Positions 38,440 to 47,457 of a stretch of 64,000 nt of DNA are shown one piece after another (within the stretch, counting starts at the first letter, position 1; every line of letters begins with the position of its first letter). The notes under the pieces were generated by a model that ran no database searches, had not been told where the DNA came from, and was given only the letters and a program-made list of their open reading frames with translations. The translations under genes were made by a program, and so were the position numbers. The stretch covers positions 434,001-498,000 of the forward strand of contig OX337240.1 in NCBI GenBank assembly GCA_946965045.2, given 5' to 3'. Source of the stretch: Epithemia pelagica (Eukaryota; Protista; Bacillariophyta).

Positions 38440-40049
38440 TTAGGGATTGCAATACCCGGGTTCACACCACATGGAACAATTGCAAATGGCACAATCCACC
38501 TTGAGATTGGCCAATTCCGACGCGGGCGGCAAGAATATAATGAGCGAGCAAATATCTTGCGCCAAGGCGGTAAAATTGTTGCCTTGCACTTCGAGGGAAT
38601 CCAAAAAGGTGCGGGGCTCATATCCACCGGGAACCGTGCCCGTCAAGCGATTGTTTCCAACATGAAAGAGTTCGAGGCGGCCATTGCCCAAGCCCGTGGG
38701 ATAACTGTCGGGAATACTACCGGACAAGGCATTGTCATTGAGAAACAAGTGTCGGAGATGCAACATGCGGGTCGAACCTTGCGACCAATCCACGGGCAAA
38801 CTACCATTGAAGTGATTGTGTGACAAGTCCAAATAAAACATGAAACGGTAATCAAGATGGGCCGGAATGGTTCCCGTCAAGTCATTGTCGTAGAGACTCA
38901 AATAGGCTGTGTCCCATAAAACACACAAGAGGCAAGGAGGAGGACAACGAGGACGACACACGCGTGTGAGAAATCAAGCCACTACTACAAACAGTCCCAA
39001 ACCAAACAACCAGAACTCTTGGACGTACTCAGTGGTCGTGCATTGGTGGCATTGGGTGCCGTGCCCAATCCTTGTGGAAAGGGACCGACAAATTGATTCA
39101 TGCTCAAGTACAAGTGTTGGAGCCGGTCCAAGTTTGCCAGCCGTTCCGGCAAGGTACCCGTCAAGGCATTGTCGTGCAAGTACAATTTTTCCAATCGGGT
39201 ACAGTCCCACAAGCCGTCGGGCAAACTGCCCATGATTTCGTTTTCGGCCAAATCCAAGACCGTCAATTGATTCGACAAGGCCCGCACTTCGTCCGGCAAA
39301 CGTCCCGTCAAGGTGCGATGGGCCCAATTCAAGGAGGCCACGGCGCGCGTGGGATGATGCGTGGCACAAGTAATGCCACTCCAATCGCACGTCGACACGT
39401 TGGGACGTACGAGATGTGCGCCCAGGGCCAAATCCAACACAACGACGGCATAACGTTCTTGCAACAACAAACCGTCGTCGGTATAGTCTTCGTCCAACAA
39501 CCATTGAACGGCTCGACTTTGGATGGAACAAGGGTCGTCGTCAAAAACGGACGTGGGCGTAATCGGAGACAGGTACGAGACCAGGTCGCGGTAGGCCAAG
39601 GACGAGGTTTCAATTTGGACACTGCCACCACAGTCGACCATCGTGGGCACGGGCGTCGAGGCCGAGGACGACGAGGAATTCTTGCGGTTGCCGCCCCGTA
39701 CCACCACCACAATAAACAATACCAGGGTCGCCACAATGGCGGCCATCACGAGACCGAGTTTCTTGCGTTGCGCCCGTCGTCGTTGCAAAATACTCGTGTG
39801 AACCCGACGTTCGGTTTGTTGATGCCAATCGTGCGCTTGTTTGGAAAATTCCTCCAAGTCTTGCATGCGCTGATTCAATTCGACATCCTTGAATTGCAGG
39901 CGATATTCATCGTCAAAGACGTCAATCGGGGCATCCAACTCATCGTCGTCGCCGTCGTCGTCGTCATGGTGGCCTTGTTCCACACCAGTGGGATCGTCCT
40001 GGTGCGGCGGCGATGCTTGATTGGCAAAACTGGCTTCTCCAGAACTCAT
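38440..40049 (-). CDS. Single-pass membrane leucine-rich-repeat protein, 2 exons
   Basis: Acidic N-terminus, TM LGLVMAAIVATLVLFIVVVV, QSRAVQWL/ERYAVVVL/CDWSGITC cap, and plant-type LRRs (LTVLDLAENEIMGSLP). Intron 39028-38907. Confidence 0.88.
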
Positions 40050-40376: not shown

Positions 40377-41432
40377 ATGACCATGACCAGCAGCATCTCC
40401 AAAGCAATGGTGGCATCTCACAGAGTTTGCTTGCGGCGGTCGGCGTCCCAATGGCTGGCCAGGACGACGTCCTTCACGGTCCAAAGGACGACGACTCGGT
40501 ACGCTCCATTATTCTTCTCCGTGAGAACCCTCCAGACTACTACGACGACAACGACACATCCGACAACGACGACACCGATTGGCACGACGGACCGCAAGTG
40601 GTTCTCCTCGTCTCGCACTCCCACCACCCACCACCAGAATGATCCTATCATTACGGGCACTATTCCCCCACGGGGCCACGGTGTACAAGTCGGACAATTG
40701 GCTCAAGTTCAACGAACCTTTTCCTTGTCCGACGTGCAAACCTATGGGAGATTGGTGGGCGACGAAAATCCCTTGCATCAACCGCCCTCGTCCTGGACCA
40801 ACAGTGAGTTGGGTCTGAGCCAAGACGATGTCGAGTTCTTTCAAACTCATCCCCTGTTGCAGCAACCAGAACAAGAACAGCAATCCATGCGGAATAATGA
40901 CAACGACAAACCCACAAGGACAACACCAAAACCGTTGATTGTGGTTCACGGCATGTTGGTGGCCAGTTTGTTTAGTTGCATTTTTGGGACCCTCGCACCG
41001 GGCGCCGTCTACATGAAGCAATCGCTGCAGTTTCACAAGCCCGTCTACGTGACTCAACCCGTCGTGGCCACGACCACCATTACACGAATTCGAGATTGGA
41101 CCGGTGGTCGTCGTCGTGGCACCCAAGCACAAGCCACTAACTCACGAGGTGGTGTGGTACTCACTTGTGATACCACGGTGCAATCCCTGGCTTCCAACAA
41201 CAACAACAACGACGACAACAACAACAAGGACACGAATCCAGAGGATGATGCCACGATCCTGTACGTGTCGGGAGAAGCCACGGTCTGGTTGTTGCAAGGA
41301 TATCCGGCGACCGTCGATGCGGTCGATTCCTCCTCACGGGACAACGACAACGACAACGACAGTCATCCCAAGAACGATGGATCCAATCCATCGACAACCT
41401 CTACGAGTCACACGACGACGACGACGACATGA
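40377..41432 (+). CDS. MaoC/hotdog-fold dehydratase (mitochondrial HTD2-like)
   Basis: R/S/T-rich presequence; RTFSLSDVQTYGRLVGDENPLH; IVVHGMLVASLF; GAVYMKQSLQFHKPVYV. Confidence 0.82.
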   Translation: MTMTSSISKAMVASHRVCLRRSASQWLARTTSFTVQRTTTRYAPLFFSVRTLQTTTTTTTHPTTTTPIGTTDRKWFSSSRTPTTHHQNDPIITGTIPPRGHGVQVGQLAQVQRTFSLSDVQTYGRLVGDENPLHQPPSSWTNSELGLSQDDVEFFQTHPLLQQPEQEQQSMRNNDNDKPTRTTPKPLIVVHGMLVASLFSCIFGTLAPGAVYMKQSLQFHKPVYVTQPVVATTTITRIRDWTGGRRRGTQAQATNSRGGVVLTCDTTVQSLASNNNNNDDNNNKDTNPEDDATILYVSGEATVWLLQGYPATVDAVDSSSRDNDNDNDSHPKNDGSNPSTTSTSHTTTTTT

Positions 41433-42382
41433 CACCACCATCCACAACAACAACAACAACCACAACCAAGGAAACGACCCACCCAAAGTGTTGTGGGTGT
41501 CTCGGATATATATATATCTACCTGACACTACTACCAACAACAACAACAGCCAACGAAAACACTCCATGGAGGCGAGTGACACTGTCTTGTTCTCTCTACC
41601 AATAGTACCGAAGGAATGGGTTTGGTTGGGTGGATGATTTCTTTGGAAATCACGTTGCTTCGACTCGTCGGTCCACACACTGTTATTATACACGCAAACA
41701 ACAAACACTCCACAACTACAATACACTACAATACAGTACTCTCCAGTGCACCCATCACAACGACGAAACCAGCACTGGCCGTGTCTCGCACGAATGCATG
41801 CCTGCAGAGAACAATGGACGACTGCGGCCGGGAGAGTACATGGAACGAGGTGGAGAATACACACACGTGTGTCGATTCATTCGCCCCACAGAGTGCGACG
41901 TTCCACTTGGAGTGCGTCTCTCTTTTCACCACAACCAAACAACCACAAACGCGAGAGGGATTAAACGCCACAAAAAATTAGTCGCCTCTGATCAAAGTTG
42001 GAGCATTCCATCTTTTTCGAGGAACACGGACCATTCAGTGTTTGTTGCCCTACAAGTCTCGCTGTTGTGAGTGGGAAAACGGCAGGTACCAACCTTGATG
42101 GCCAACCCTTGTCCACCTTTCTTCGTGTTGAAACACTCGATGGAATAGGAGTAAGGACTCTCGGTATATACATCAAAAATGGTGTGTTTATTGGTATATA
42201 TATATTTCTCTCTAGCGCAACACATCATCCTACAGAGCACTCCAGTACAAACATTCCTCATTCACAAATGCGGATTCCAAAAAAAAAGACCCGAGACGGC
42301 TGGTAGAGGAGACCAAAAGGGCACTTGGTTGTCCACTGTGGTCGTCCTTTGTGGTTGTTGTTGTTGGTTCTTTGTTTTTGTT

Positions 42383-44809
42383 TCATCTCCACACCACTTG
42401 CCTCAAGGCTGCATTTTCATGTCGGAGAGCCGCTTGATAAATTTGCGTTTCTTCGGCTGTCGTGGCTCGTTCCAATTGTTCTTGCAAGACGGCAATGTTT
42501 TCATGAATTTTGGTCCGTCGTTCCGTGGGGGAGGCACCGGGTTCGCCACCATAATAGGGCAAGAGGTAATGATTGGCGGGAAAGGCTGATCCCACCAAGG
42601 TTCCAAATTCGGCCCGCGTCGGTGACGTTTTGGGATTGGCCGCCTGCAAGCGTTCTTCGGCCGTGCCAACATAGACCTCGTCGCGTTGAAAACCCGCCAC
42701 GTTCTTGTGAATGGCCGCCAAGACCCAGGCGCCATTGCAAATGCCCGTGGCTTCCAACAACAAACAAATGCGCAACAACAAATACGTGACGGGCGTGGAC
42801 AAAAAGGCCAAGGGAAAGGCGGACGCCATGAGTTGCCAGGCAATGGACGCCAAAATCGTCGTAATCAATGCTCCGAGCAGACCGGTACTAAAAAATTCTT
42901 GCGCTGTATCGGAAACTCCCAAGACATTGGATTCGCCCTCCTCCACATCCATGGAAGTGACGCGGGCAATGACAAAGAAACAGGCCACGACAAACAATTG
43001 TCGACCCACCATGAATCCCGGCAAGTTCCGACCTTCGCCCCGAAACAAGAGATCGCAAGTCCGAGAGGCCCAGACGGACGAATTGCGTTCTTCGTCTGTC
43101 AATTTGGCCACGGCAAAAAAGGCAATTTGCATCCCTTCCAACATGCCCACAATGGACATGAGAAAGAGAAACAAAATAAGAGCCACCGCTTCGGGGATAC
43201 CATCCCAGACGGTCGTTTTGCCTTCAAACAGGGCGGCAATTGTCGCCACCAGGGCAAAGGTTAACAGGGCACAGGACAGGAGGACGCGTCCCCAGAAAAG
43301 TGTTTTCTGGCAAGCGTCTCGTGGTTCTTCGTTGGATTCAATGGTTTTACCCGCCAATCGAAACAAGAGAATTTGAATCAAGTAGGACGCGTGCAAGAGA
43401 CCGGACGCTTCAATGGCCATGGCCACCTTGACGGTAAACCAGTTGCCCCAGTCATTGATGAAATCCAACATGCAATGAGAGGCATTGACTTGTGTATTGA
43501 GCTGACCAATCATGCACGTCATGAGAATCATGGCCAAGCCCGAATCCAAAAAGGCGTTGGAAACCACATCGGGCAGATTCAAGACACTGGCATCTTGAAT
43601 GGGGGCACCCGACAAGTTGATGATAAAGACCAGAGCTAGAACCATGAACTGACGACCAATCAAATAACGATCCAGATTGTCTCCACGGTGACCATGCTCA
43701 CAAATACGATAACTAATGGGATGACTTTCCTTGTACAGTTGACGATCAATCGGTGGAAGTCCAACCATGGAGGCTTGTCCACCTTCCACCAAGGATAACC
43801 ACAACAGGGAGACCCAAATGAGCAAAAAGGCCACGGCCGGGTGCGTATCTTCCGACAAGCTGGTTTGTTGATCAAAAATGAGGGCCATGACGACGACAAT
43901 GGAAAAGACGAGGAGCGCCAAGGAAAAGACCGACTTGATAATGCCCACCGGATTTTTCAAGTGTGCTTGAGAGGCTGTTGTGGGTGTCGCCGAAGCAGGA
44001 GAGGTTGGTTCATTGTCGTTGGCGGCGGCAGCATGGGCTCGTTTGGTCAAGGTTGCCACAGCCGCAGGACTAGTAATGATTGGAGTGGGTGGCACCGCCT
44101 GTTCTTGGCTGGTATTGGTCGATGCTGCTGATGCACGGGGAAGAGGAACCGACACTTGCAATTCTTCTGATTCCAATCCATCGCTGACATCGGAACATTG
44201 AATAAACAAGGCATCGGCAATTTTGACCAGGGCATTCTCTTTGGAAATCTCGTACCATTTTTGAGAGGCGGCACTCAACCGACGCTTGTTATTACTTTTG
44301 GTCGTGTCTGTTTCTGCCGACACGGGTTTGTGGATCAAAAATCGACCTCCCTGATCTCGTATTTGGGTATAAATGGAATTGGAAATTTGGTTTCGTTCAG
44401 CTCGACTCGTGGCTCGAAGATAGGCCGATCGATGTTGGGCTACCAGAGCTTCGTATCGTCGCGTACCAATGTGATTGAGGGCCTTTTGAGTCCGTCCCAA
44501 CAAGGGAACATCCCATTCGCCCCACTCAAAGACGGAAATTTTGGGACTGTCCGTTTCATCCTGGAGTTGGAACAATTGTTGTTGTTGTTGATCCTGTTGT
44601 TCTCGAATCGCATTCTGGTTGGAATCAAAGGGTAAGGCCATTTCTTGAAAAATGGGTTCTCCCGAATTGCCCAAATCCCAATCATCGTCATCCTCGTCAT
44701 GGGACAGATACGAAGAAGGGTCTCCCCTCATGCGATCGTCAAGGGGCAAGCCATTGATGGAACTAAATTGACTCGAGGACAAATCGGTGGTTGTCTCCGA
44801 AGTACTCAT
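42383..44809 (-). CDS. SIT: Silicon transporter (SIT) with a ~285-aa N-terminal extension containing a DUF6824-like domain
   Basis: All four GxQ motifs (EGGQ, IGRQ, EGMQ, VGRQ), CMLDFIN, EASGLLHASY, about 10 TM segments and a C-terminal coiled coil; uninterrupted 808-aa ORF. Confidence 0.93.
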   Translation of the reverse strand: MSTSETTTDLSSSQFSSINGLPLDDRMRGDPSSYLSHDEDDDDWDLGNSGEPIFQEMALPFDSNQNAIREQQDQQQQQLFQLQDETDSPKISVFEWGEWDVPLLGRTQKALNHIGTRRYEALVAQHRSAYLRATSRAERNQISNSIYTQIRDQGGRFLIHKPVSAETDTTKSNNKRRLSAASQKWYEISKENALVKIADALFIQCSDVSDGLESEELQVSVPLPRASAASTNTSQEQAVPPTPIITSPAAVATLTKRAHAAAANDNEPTSPASATPTTASQAHLKNPVGIIKSVFSLALLVFSIVVVMALIFDQQTSLSEDTHPAVAFLLIWVSLLWLSLVEGGQASMVGLPPIDRQLYKESHPISYRICEHGHRGDNLDRYLIGRQFMVLALVFIINLSGAPIQDASVLNLPDVVSNAFLDSGLAMILMTCMIGQLNTQVNASHCMLDFINDWGNWFTVKVAMAIEASGLLHASYLIQILLFRLAGKTIESNEEPRDACQKTLFWGRVLLSCALLTFALVATIAALFEGKTTVWDGIPEAVALILFLFLMSIVGMLEGMQIAFFAVAKLTDEERNSSVWASRTCDLLFRGEGRNLPGFMVGRQLFVVACFFVIARVTSMDVEEGESNVLGVSDTAQEFFSTGLLGALITTILASIAWQLMASAFPLAFLSTPVTYLLLRICLLLEATGICNGAWVLAAIHKNVAGFQRDEVYVGTAEERLQAANPKTSPTRAEFGTLVGSAFPANHYLLPYYGGEPGASPTERRTKIHENIAVLQEQLERATTAEETQIYQAALRHENAALRQVVWR

Positions 44810-45499
44810 GGTATAGGAGGCAAGAGTCCAAAGGATAGAAGAAGGAGCAAGACTTTTTGGCTCTACCTCTGGTAGAGCGATTGTTGTTCAGGCGATTCTA
44901 GAGAGAAATCAACGTACGATGATGAGACCGTGGCACTTCTTTCTTCTTTATCAGATCTCTGTGTGGAATGGACAGAATCGAGAAAGAAAAATCATAAGTC
45001 ATGTGTCTGGGCAGGTTGTTCTCTCTCTCATCGTGAGGTTAAGTAGATTTGCATGGATCGTGGTAGCTTCAACCGTTGGTATCTGATTCAACGGAGGATA
45101 CTCCAACCCATAACGCTCCTTTACCTGCGCATAAATGTTCTCGAACACGTTTTGTGCGCTCAATGTATCACAGAAATAAAAACGTTTATGGTTTCGGTTT
45201 TTGTCAAAAAAATGATGAAAACCTTCTCTGATATGTACTACGATACAATAGAATGATTTCAACGGATTTCAGAACCGAAATAGTTTATGTTACCATACAA
45301 CGAAATCCGTCAAACACTTTCTAGCAGAAACACAAACGATGACCACGTGCGTCCACGTCCACGGCGCACCGCGCACCTCGCCTTTCATTGGGCGCACCGA
45401 ACGGAACGCAGGGCGATCGGTCCATATCTATCTGTTGGTGTTGGGGAATAGAACAATGGTCTCACGAATCACATTCTCCCACAATCAACATCCCTCAAT

Positions 45500-45812
45500 A
45501 TGGAGCACCTCTCTTACTCTGTCGCTTTCCGACATGGTAGGTAGGCGAACGCGAAACTTTCATGTGACAACCACGACTTGTGGAGAAACTACTCGCGATG
45601 GTATACGACAACTATTGAATCGTTCCATTCGTTCGCAGGCATTTTGATATTAATATTATGGAGCACCTCTCTTTCCTGCAGCTGTAGAGGAAAGCGAACA
45701 TTATTTCATGTGCCACGCACGACTTGTGGAGAAACTACTCTAGCAATGGGATACGACAACAACTCAACAAGCACTATCTCGACTACCTAGGAATCGTTCC
45801 ATTCGTTCGCAG
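45500..45812. repeat. Diverged tandem duplication, unit about 158 bp
   Basis: Copies 45500-45638 and 45658-45812 share ATGGAGCACCTCTCT, CACGACTTGTGGAGAAACTACTC and GAATCGTTCCATTCGTTCGCAG in the same order. Confidence 0.85.
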
Positions 45813-46176
45813 TCCTTCGTGGTGGAGACTGCGCACCTATATGGAATGGTGGAACGAAGGCGACCGATCCACATGGTTTTGGTTCGTTTTTCATTCCCTC
45901 TCTACGAATCTTGTCAAGTCGCTTGCTAGTCCCGACATGGACGGACATGGGGCATGATACTAGGCGTGCGACACTTGGTCGTCGTACCATTGTCGTATAA
46001 GACGTTTCTGGATTGTGTCGATTGGCAGCACTCTCTTGTTTCTCATACTAGGTATGATTGTTGTTCCATAGACATACACCACAACACTCTATGGTATATG
46101 ATTTATATGGTGTATGCAAGATCATTGGTACGATTTCTAGTAGATTTCAGAACTACAATTTTCTAGACTGGCGTTC

Positions 46177-47457
46177 TTAGGCGTGTTGCTGCTCGGTACA
46201 CTGCTTGGCAGTGGATTCTTGTGGTTGTTGCCACGACGACACTAAGGATTTCAAGACTCGGTTCGCAGCACTCACGGCTCCTTCCATGACACCGGGCGAG
46301 TGCCAATCGGTTTCCGACCCGGCAAATTCCAGCAGTCCATTCCATTCCAGTGTGGACAAGGCTCGCAACGGATGCGGATGGGGATGAATGGTCGTGGGCG
46401 CCGCATCTTCACTAATATATCGTTCCAATGGCCATCGTTGGACATGATAGTGGGTATAGGACAAGGCTTGTTGGGCCGCCTGTGGTTCTTGGAGGTGCGT
46501 CCAAACGTGCACCATTTGCGTGGCCACTTGTCGGGCCAAGACGGCATTGTCGTGGAGTGCATCATTGGCAGTGTTATTGCTGGGGAGCGTAAAAAAGGTC
46601 AAGGCCGACACGGATGAATCATCATTGTCGACGACGGTCGTACTACTGTCATAAACTTGAAAGGCGGGTGCCCCGGGCCCTCGTGGCAATCCCATATTGG
46701 AGGAATCGGACTTCCAAAATTTGTGGGCATAGACCAAGGCCACCTTGGTGACTCCGGCCATCCAGGTAGGGGAGGCCGCCCAAGCCCGTTGTTTGGCCAT
46801 TGAGACGGGAGGATCAAATTCCACATGCTTCTCGACGAGCTTGGGTGGGACACAAAAGACGACGCGACGAGCCCACACGAGGGATGGTTCGTCCTTGTCC
46901 TTGTCGTTGTTGGTGGTTTCCAATTGGATCAACCGTTGGCCGTCGTTGGTAGATTCCTTCACAAGCGTGCATTTCGTCACGGGCGTATTGAGAACAATGC
47001 GCGGTTCCTCGTCGTCATCATCCCTTGCTTGTTGTTGTTGTTCAATTTGCGCCCGCAAGGCATGCACCAGTTGAACCGCTCCTCCTTGAATCCGAGTCGA
47101 CGACGCATCGTCGGGTTGCACAAAGGTTGTGAGATTCAAGTCGTCGACCAACTTTCTCATGTGGGGTTGATGCGACGGCCAAATCCAGGCCCCGCCCATG
47201 TCAATGGCGTCCGTCGTCGACTTTGTATTCGTAGTGGGCAAAGGATTAGCCAATCGTCCTCCGAGGACGGACCGTGCTTCCAACAATTTCCATTCCAGGG
47301 CTGGTTGTGCTTGCTGTTGCAAGCCATGACCCAAGACCAAGCCACTCAATCCACCTCCCACCACAATGACATCCCAAATTTTGCGGGCTACAGTCGTTGT
47401 TGTTTCATGAGAGGAGGAGGGAGGCTTGGGGAGGGAAACCATTTTGATTGATACCAA
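46177..47457 (-). CDS. Flavin-containing amine oxidase (short monoamine-oxidase type)
   Basis: DVIVVGGGLSGL, LEARSVLGGRL, DMGGAWIWP, FAGSET and GVMEGAVSAANR. Confidence 0.88.
   Translation of the reverse strand: MVSIKMVSLPKPPSSSHETTTTVARKIWDVIVVGGGLSGLVLGHGLQQQAQPALEWKLLEARSVLGGRLANPLPTTNTKSTTDAIDMGGAWIWPSHQPHMRKLVDDLNLTTFVQPDDASSTRIQGGAVQLVHALRAQIEQQQQARDDDDEEPRIVLNTPVTKCTLVKESTNDGQRLIQLETTNNDKDKDEPSLVWARRVVFCVPPKLVEKHVEFDPPVSMAKQRAWAASPTWMAGVTKVALVYAHKFWKSDSSNMGLPRGPGAPAFQVYDSSTTVVDNDDSSVSALTFFTLPSNNTANDALHDNAVLARQVATQMVHVWTHLQEPQAAQQALSYTHYHVQRWPLERYISEDAAPTTIHPHPHPLRALSTLEWNGLLEFAGSETDWHSPGVMEGAVSAANRVLKSLVSSWQQPQESTAKQCTEQQHA

Follow-up and report, generated by a model that had tools for sequence, protein, structure and literature searches.

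Whether a silicon transporter can be built as one protein with a soluble domain, and what such a domain would do there, is the question raised by a gene of the diatom Epithemia pelagica. We analysed a window of 64,000 nucleotides (GenBank assembly GCA_946965045.2, contig OX337240.1, positions 434,001 to 498,000 of the forward strand; coordinates below are positions within this window), in which one open reading frame (ORF) encodes a DUF6824 domain followed in frame by a silicon transporter (SIT). A first-pass annotation, made from the letters alone, had read the gene as a candidate silicon transceptor: a transporter with a regulatory or DNA-binding module, possibly a membrane-tethered sensor that would be cleaved and imported into the nucleus. 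We conclude that the fused protein is very probably real. The joint claim, that a real fused protein is an active transporter and that its extension acts as a docking or regulatory module, we consider probable on balance.

Layout and apparent transcription of the fused gene

The coding sequence lies at 42383..44809 on the (-) strand, as do all features of the gene given here, and the ORF list confirmed it as a single exon of 808 codons plus a stop codon that opens with ATG. The fusion protein is also recorded as one gene on European Nucleotide Archive (ENA) contig ctg1339l. Amino acids (aa) 1-97 (44519..44809) make up an acidic N-terminal region with a net charge of -17, predicted to be disordered by its predicted local distance difference test score (pLDDT), which was 42-53 over aa 1-95 when aa 1-215 were folded with AlphaFold2. 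This segment was folded in place of a composite full-length alignment, which was dropped because DUF6824 pieces had been misplaced on the SIT part. Two blocks stand out in the region. The first, aa 14-25 (QFSSINGLPLDD; 44735..44770), is a linear motif shared with a soluble subfamily ('LLSSPIG.IDG') in alignments with the soluble proteins and with an Epithemia ortholog, both described below. The second, aa 44-60 (WDLGNSGEPIFQEMALP; 44630..44680), is the best-conserved block of the extension, and all 17 of its residues are identical in the ortholog. Judged by the model, what is conserved in aa 1-95 is probably a set of short linear motifs within acidic, disordered sequence. The DUF6824 domain follows at aa 98-203 (44201..44518; Pfam and AlphaFold2 model) and opens with the subfamily signature WGEWDVP; the Pfam envelope covers aa 103-201 (44207-44503). 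The domain peptide had earlier been assigned to 44515-44207, and this stretch does encode it, starting one codon early at W99, with the D of 'DVPLL' read from 44512. A linker, delimited by composition and Met positions (aa 204-286, 43952..44200), leads into a complete SIT core (aa 287-796, 42422..43951). Within the core are EGGQ (aa 342-345, 43775..43786), GRQ (aa 385-387, 43649..43657), EGMQ (aa 558-561, 43127..43138), and a second GRQ (aa 602-604, 42998..43006), all invariant in the ortholog alignment, which also defines a conserved C-terminal tail at aa 763-808 (42386..42523). Methionines occur at positions 1, 27, and 57 and next only at 308, inside the first transmembrane helix (TM1). The first-pass annotation was thus correct that there is no Met between the domain and TM1, so no stand-alone SIT could be translated from an internal AUG.

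The match of the SIT core to PF03842 (Silic_transp) reached 722.5 bits (E 3e-217; gathering score 26.8) over positions 4-490 of a 513-position profile, and together with the motif positions it bears out the earlier description of a complete SIT with four motifs. The NCBIfam model TIGR00811 'sit' matched with 663.7 bits over positions 6-523 of 548, under the NCBI curated cut-off of 1047.6; by its profile matches the window SIT belongs to the family and falls outside the narrow trusted TIGR00811 set. A crude hydropathy scan gave seven strong segments, with more at a lower threshold, and the full-length profile alignment implies all ten transmembrane helices. In 112 unfused SITs, conservation reaches at least 95% at 130 columns. 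The window SIT core keeps all 130 and the ortholog 125, its changes being conservative; ordinary SITs deviate at a median of one such column. Because every one of these columns is kept, transport function is most likely retained, and the alignment indicates that the window SIT is most likely still a transporter and not a degenerate sensor. We rejected a degenerate, non-transporting sensor of the Ssy1/Snf3 type, since no highly conserved SIT column deviates. The core is 76% identical to P0008, an unfused SIT of Epithemia clementina, and 55% identical to the SIT of Cylindrotheca fusiformis. Both fused SITs end in '...ALRQ[VL]VWR', without the acidic C-terminal tail of P0008 and the C. fusiformis SIT, and this shortened VWR terminus is, by alignment, a second derived trait common to the fusion pair. 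This tail may form a coiled coil, as is described for SITs in the literature.

A missing DUF6824 profile match had been named beforehand as grounds for abandoning the reading of the extension. We found a PF20710 match of 55.4 bits (E 8e-15; gathering score 27) over positions 3-82 of the 84-position profile, and of 60.1 bits with the domain cut out. Among 24 family columns that are at least 80% conserved, the window domain keeps 19, the deviations being N116T, R120E, K139R, Q199D, and R202F, and the GN.R[FY]R of soluble proteins has become GTRRY[EQ] in the fusions. The core positions DV, G, Y, GGRFL, W.E, and A..K are kept in the window domain. At the level of sequence, these changes fit a module that was retained but retuned. 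An AlphaFold2 model of the domain built from 67 family sequences (pLDDT 84.9, predicted template-modelling score 0.76) begins with a short strand and a short helix, continues with two long helices and then a beta-hairpin whose loop is variable, and closes with a final helix. The only meaningful structural match was an ESM Atlas cluster that is itself 99% DUF6824 (template-modelling score 0.72, root mean square deviation 1.9 over 96 residues). A profile search of the PDB by sequence found no match (best E 0.78), Foldseek against the PDB gave no match at E <=0.001, and the best of 48,161 chains in VIA-align, a GT-1 trihelix DNA-binding domain, scored Z 5.3, short of the value of about 8 that the tool gives as its guide to noise.

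Of the four public sequencing runs that cover the locus, three have coverage both in genes and between them and are therefore DNA. The fourth, X1 (39 million letters, longest contig 19.6 kb), had depth at 42182-44939 and, from 46122, over the adjacent gene; its depth was weak at 41197-41590, where a gene ends, and zero at 41591-42181 and 44940-46121. Depth over gene bodies with none between them is a transcriptome pattern, from which we infer that X1 is RNA. Coverage by X1 extends over 42182..44874, which would give the transcript a 5' untranslated region (UTR) of at least 65 nucleotides and a 3' UTR of about 190 nucleotides. The X1 contigs lie at 42489-42913, 42915-43735, 43706-43892, 43863-44461, and 44526-44874; the fourth of these bridges the DUF6824 domain, the linker, and TM1, and the fifth extends 65 nucleotides upstream of the ATG. 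Depth was alike in both halves of the gene, no joints were present inside the gene in any of the four runs, and X1 had no splicing or break across the junction, in agreement with the first-pass annotation. We conclude that the gene appears to be transcribed as one unit, on evidence that is good but not final.

Just 3' of the stop codon (42383-42385), contigs from all four runs diverge into unlike sequence at 42349 and 42366. In one X1 contig (depth 152), the stretch 42350-42480, which includes the last 32 codons, is swapped for 37 other letters. An allelic structural variant could account for the break at 42349-42480, as could an alternative 3' end. The C-terminus present in the window is the version conserved in E. 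clementina.

Distribution, origin, and conservation of the fusion

To place the fusion among known proteins, we examined the best 120 of 617 SIT relatives and the best 150 of 1,203 DUF6824 representatives; word-indexed searches, where used, can miss distant relatives. Among the SIT relatives, the only other protein with the same two Pfam domains was P0005, an 852-aa 'hypothetical protein' of E. clementina, and none of the 112 unfused SITs compared has the DUF6824-SIT architecture. The distance from the N-terminus to the first EGxQ had a median of 61 aa in 114 SITs, which bears out the statement that short N-termini are typical, compared with 341 aa in the window protein and 382 aa in the ortholog, the longest of the set. 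The value of 210 for P0053 and P0051 is spurious, because both are N-terminally truncated (Pfam match from profile position 65) and the second EGxQ was picked up; the longest real N-terminus of an unfused SIT is 195 aa (P0090). The features that the first-pass annotation had observed were thus all confirmed, and chance cannot account for them. A Pfam scan of the other SITs with long N-termini found neither DUF6824 nor any extra domain.

The same rarity was seen from the side of the domain. When the conserved part of the extension was used for an exhaustive profile search, the 1,203 representatives were returned at E <=0.001, and the 110 of the best 150 that were scanned with Pfam were all DUF6824 proteins. 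Besides the ortholog, none of the 149 best representatives is polytopic and 144 have no hydrophobic segment at all, so the claim that DUF6824 proteins are otherwise soluble also stood. When 107 DUF6824 proteins were scanned whole, other Pfam families appeared only in single cases (zf-BED, C2H2, NB-ARC, PP2C, and a few weak matches). A region search with aa 1-285 against proteins of 444-1414 aa returned only the two orthologs, and neither the cut-out extension searched against proteins of 160-507 aa nor a search of Joint Genome Institute (JGI) metagenome contigs gave further copies of the architecture. In the literature we found no mention of DUF6824, of the motif string, or of a SIT fused to a soluble domain; papers on SIT evolution mention no soluble-domain fusion (PMC10700740, PMC5100055), and the Epithemia genome paper does not discuss SITs (PMC12377750). 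We conclude that, at present sampling, the fusion is restricted to the Rhopalodiaceae.

The SIT searches also returned two kinds of unusual protein. P0002, P0003, P0004, P0006, P0011, and P0017 (737-1399 aa) are probably tandem SIT-SIT proteins, and two full Silic_transp stretches were confirmed in P0006 and P0017. P0070, a 562-aa SIT that is 55% identical to the query, carries the NCBI label of a Clostridia metagenome-assembled genome. In the tree described next it stands among diatom SITs, by P0115 and the C. fusiformis SIT, and diatom DNA that was binned with a bacterial genome is its probable source.

In E. clementina, a single ORF without interruption encodes the ortholog, which is 59% identical to the window protein over 98% of the query and whose gene model was produced by BRAKER2 with RNA-seq evidence (PMC12377750). 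A tree of 49 SIT cores joins the two fused SITs as sisters (Shimodaira-Hasegawa-like approximate likelihood ratio test 97) within an 11-member rhopalodiacean clade (99). The nearest neighbour of the pair is the unfused 548-aa E. clementina SIT P0008 (ACA910_007252), and the branches of the fused SITs are slightly longer than the others (0.29 and 0.41 vs <=0.26). On the simplest history, a SIT gene was duplicated in this lineage and the fusion then happened once, in a common ancestor of the two species. Neither fusion protein has a Met between the domain and TM1, and the residue aligned to the start Met of the unfused paralog is not Met in either of them.

The extension itself resembles a distinct subfamily of soluble DUF6824 proteins, represented among the best non-orthologous matches listed by P0121, P0125, P0126, P0128, P0130, P0132, and P0136 and marked by the signature WGEWDVPLGR...GGRFLDKK...W[YF]EI.QEKALAKISQALR. 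Ahead of the domain, this subfamily has the 'LLSSPIG.IDG' motif and an acidic 'DD.W' block, whose aligned counterparts in the window protein are aa 14-25 and aa 40-50. Because the motifs and the domain, from aa 1 to about 205, all align with the soluble subfamily, the whole extension corresponds to the front half of such a gene. The closest soluble relative among the matches listed is P0121, a protein of 1006 aa (L003:3001-6021, ENA ERZ25042306 ctg2935l) from an ENA assembly other than that of the window. The 'QALRIP' with which P0121 continues after the domain is also present in the E. clementina fusion, and P0121 may descend from the donor gene.

We next asked how the extension has changed since the two species separated. 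Synonymous sites between the two fusion genes are saturated, with a proportion of synonymous differences (pS) of about 0.7. Ratios of nonsynonymous to synonymous rates (dN/dS) would therefore be unreliable, and we report pS and the proportion of nonsynonymous differences (pN) instead. pN was lowest in the SIT core, at 0.12, and highest in the linker, at 0.49; the domain had 0.37, and aa 36-70 had 0.16 with a pS of 0.81. The linker consists of 57% S, T, P, and A and is poorly conserved except for the stretch adjoining TM1, being 30% identical to that of the ortholog. The reading frame of the extension has stayed open in both species despite the saturated synonymous sites. Judged by these comparisons, the extension is under purifying selection.

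The surroundings of the gene also favour orthology: a homologous leucine-rich-repeat protein gene adjoins the fusion in both species at a distance of a few kb (38440-39887 in the window, L001:384-1736 in E. clementina; 54-69% identity by tblastx). It lies downstream of the fusion in the window and upstream in E. clementina, which indicates local rearrangement. The upstream neighbour in the window, at 46177-47457 (-), is a flavin amine-oxidase-like gene (PF01593, PF13450), covered by X1 at about one quarter of the contig depth of the SIT fusion.

Possible functions of the extension

Given these results, we propose that the fusion arose once, before the split of E. pelagica and E. clementina, when the 5' half of a soluble 'WGEWDVPLGR' DUF6824 gene would have taken the place of the start of a SIT gene that had recently been duplicated. 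The donated part would comprise two short linear motifs in an acidic disordered region and a globular domain. The product is most likely an active silicic-acid transporter, judging by its conserved core. The SIT N-terminus is predicted to face inward (PMC5100055), and with no hydrophobic leader present the extension should be cytosolic, held on a flexible linker of 80 aa. An acidic N-terminus without hydrophobic character, together with the predicted inward orientation of the SIT N-terminus, also led us to reject a signal peptide or a lumenal position for the extension. In the cytosol, the extension could serve as a docking or regulatory module, the motifs and the DUF6824 domain binding a partner that is probably common to the soluble paralogs. 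Binding of this partner would subject the trafficking, turnover, or activity of the fused SIT copy to control, and the extension would not be released as a DNA-binding factor.

Several points weigh against this proposal. N116 and R120, near-invariant polar residues of the 'GN.RFR' signature, are changed in both fusion proteins (N116T and R120E/Q), and loss of the two may reflect a change in binding or some decay of the function that the domain had ancestrally. No structural relative of DUF6824 was found in the fold searches, so we infer the docking role from the architecture. Conservation is judged across one species split between two carrier species, and transporter activity rests on sequence conservation. 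Finally, X1 is identified as RNA by its coverage, and its contigs neither establish that there is one transcript nor rule out a minor internal start.

A different explanation is that the protein is a true transceptor, in which the conformational cycling of the SIT alters binding by the N-terminal module, for example by sequestering or releasing a partner of the soluble paralogs, and so turns transport into a signal for gene expression or the cell cycle. The architecture would parallel that of transporter homologs that act as nutrient sensors and carry a unique cytosolic extension, such as yeast Ssy1 and Snf3/Rgt2 and human SLC38A9. Purifying selection on the extension is consistent with this explanation, as are the motifs it has in common with soluble proteins that have long low-complexity tails, and a sensing role has already been proposed for some SITs, namely TpSIT3 (PMC5100055, PMC10700740, PMC10098502). 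The SIT core, however, has none of the degeneration expected of a sensor, and the fold searches gave no structural clue to the function of DUF6824. Because the fusion is confined to two species, it cannot be a general diatom silicon sensor. Taken together, we consider signalling of this kind unlikely. The fuller version, in which the module couples a working SIT to the partners of the large diatom-specific and possibly gene-regulatory DUF6824 family and the protein is a true silicon transceptor, we regard as somewhat less likely again.

The extension might also be a neutral or partly decayed passenger, left by an accidental fusion that was tolerated since the transporter was undisturbed. The limited distribution, in two species, would agree with this, as would a Pfam score of 55 bits compared with about 70-90 per domain in typical family members, the lost signature residues, and the slightly longer branches of the fused SITs. 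Against a passenger, the frame is open over 286-330 codons at saturated synonymous sites, pN is well under pS in the motif block and the domain, the 17-residue block is identical in both species, and the hydrophobic-core and GGRFL/W positions are all kept. We therefore find a passenger improbable.

We also considered a membrane-tethered transcription factor, in which DUF6824 would bind DNA and, cut off according to silicon status, enter the nucleus. The window domain (aa 98-205) is basic, with a net charge of +8, rare relatives pair DUF6824 with zf-BED or C2H2 fingers, and small helical domains that bind DNA are among the weak top structural matches (GT-1 trihelix, Z 5.3; Zeste, Z 3.8). Both of these Z-scores are at noise level by the tool's calibration, however, and the E. 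clementina domain piece has a net charge of -4. The extension has a single basic cluster, KRR at aa 180-182, which the ortholog lacks, and inspection found no conserved nuclear-localisation-like motif between the two fusion proteins. Together with the replacement of the near-invariant N116 and R120 in both fusions, the unconserved KRR and the net-negative E. clementina domain argue against a conserved nucleic-acid-binding, nucleus-bound role. The linker, in which a cut would have to fall, is poorly conserved apart from the stretch by TM1, and polytopic transporters are not known to undergo regulated proteolysis of this kind. A tethered factor is thus very improbable. From the interpretation offered in the first-pass annotation, the in-frame obligate fusion stood, and the regulatory or DNA-binding, sensor, and cleavage with nuclear import readings were left unsupported by the noise-level fold search, the unconserved KRR, the replaced signature residues, and the intact SIT core. 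It is just as hard to credit an artefact, in which a separate DUF6824 gene and a SIT seem fused through misassembly, a mis-called intron, or separate transcription of the SIT: the public record of the window holds only prokaryote-style ORF calls and X1 is RNA by its coverage pattern, but the continuous ORF recurs in the independently assembled and annotated E. clementina, contigs from the three DNA runs and from RNA-like X1 match the window over the junction without joints, and the ancestral SIT start codon is gone in both species, with the first downstream Met inside TM1.

Significance and comparison with known systems

Silicon sensing in diatoms is a long-standing question, and SITs have been suggested as sensors without a structural feature to support the suggestion; DUF6824 is a large, diatom-expanded family without a known function. 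In the present comparison, we found the first SIT joined to a non-SIT domain, and the join is conserved, selected, and apparently expressed. Its value is limited in that it concerns one small diatom family whose members are hard to manipulate, and in that the functional statements are deduced. The fusion does offer a concrete experiment, in which the full-length protein is compared with a truncated one and the first 205 aa serve as bait for partners, and which could show both DUF6824 binding and transporter regulation. If the protein were a true transceptor, the fusion would be a 'Rosetta stone' that gives a first functional handle on DUF6824 and on diatom silicon sensing.

Yeast Ssy1 and Snf3/Rgt2, human SLC38A9, and Arabidopsis NRT1.1 are nutrient sensors or transceptors. 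By analogy, and with no homology, they may be likened to the fusion in that a long cytosolic extension sets a member of a transporter family apart. Ssy1 and Snf3/Rgt2 have lost conserved transporter residues, whereas the window SIT core has not. Among diatom proteins, Phaeodactylum tricornutum PtSIT3 is described as having 'a long N-terminal extension' and as being divergent and weakly expressed, and a non-transport role has been proposed for it (PMC2758714); it resembles the fusion in its unusual N-terminus, a likeness drawn from the published description. The tandem multi-SITs of pennate diatoms (P0002, P0003, P0006, P0017), a type of gene described for Synedra (PMC6114903), are likewise fusions of SIT genes, but they join SIT to SIT, whereas the window gene joins a SIT to an unrelated soluble domain. 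With other diatom SITs (PF03842; C. fusiformis SIT1, P0008), the fusion shares the full-length core, both EGxQ/GRQ pairs, and the conserved C-terminal tail. It differs from them by 286 extra N-terminal residues with a folded DUF6824 domain, by having no start codon of its own for the SIT, and by the short VWR C-terminus. With the soluble 'WGEWDVPLGR' proteins (P0121, P0125, P0126, P0128), it shares the same order of elements: an LLSSPIG.IDG-like motif, an acidic DD.W block, and a domain of the form WGEWDVP...GGRFL...W.EI..E.AL.KI..AL. In those proteins the domain is followed by a long Q/S/P-rich low-complexity tail without membrane segments, and in the fusions the transporter takes the place of that tail.

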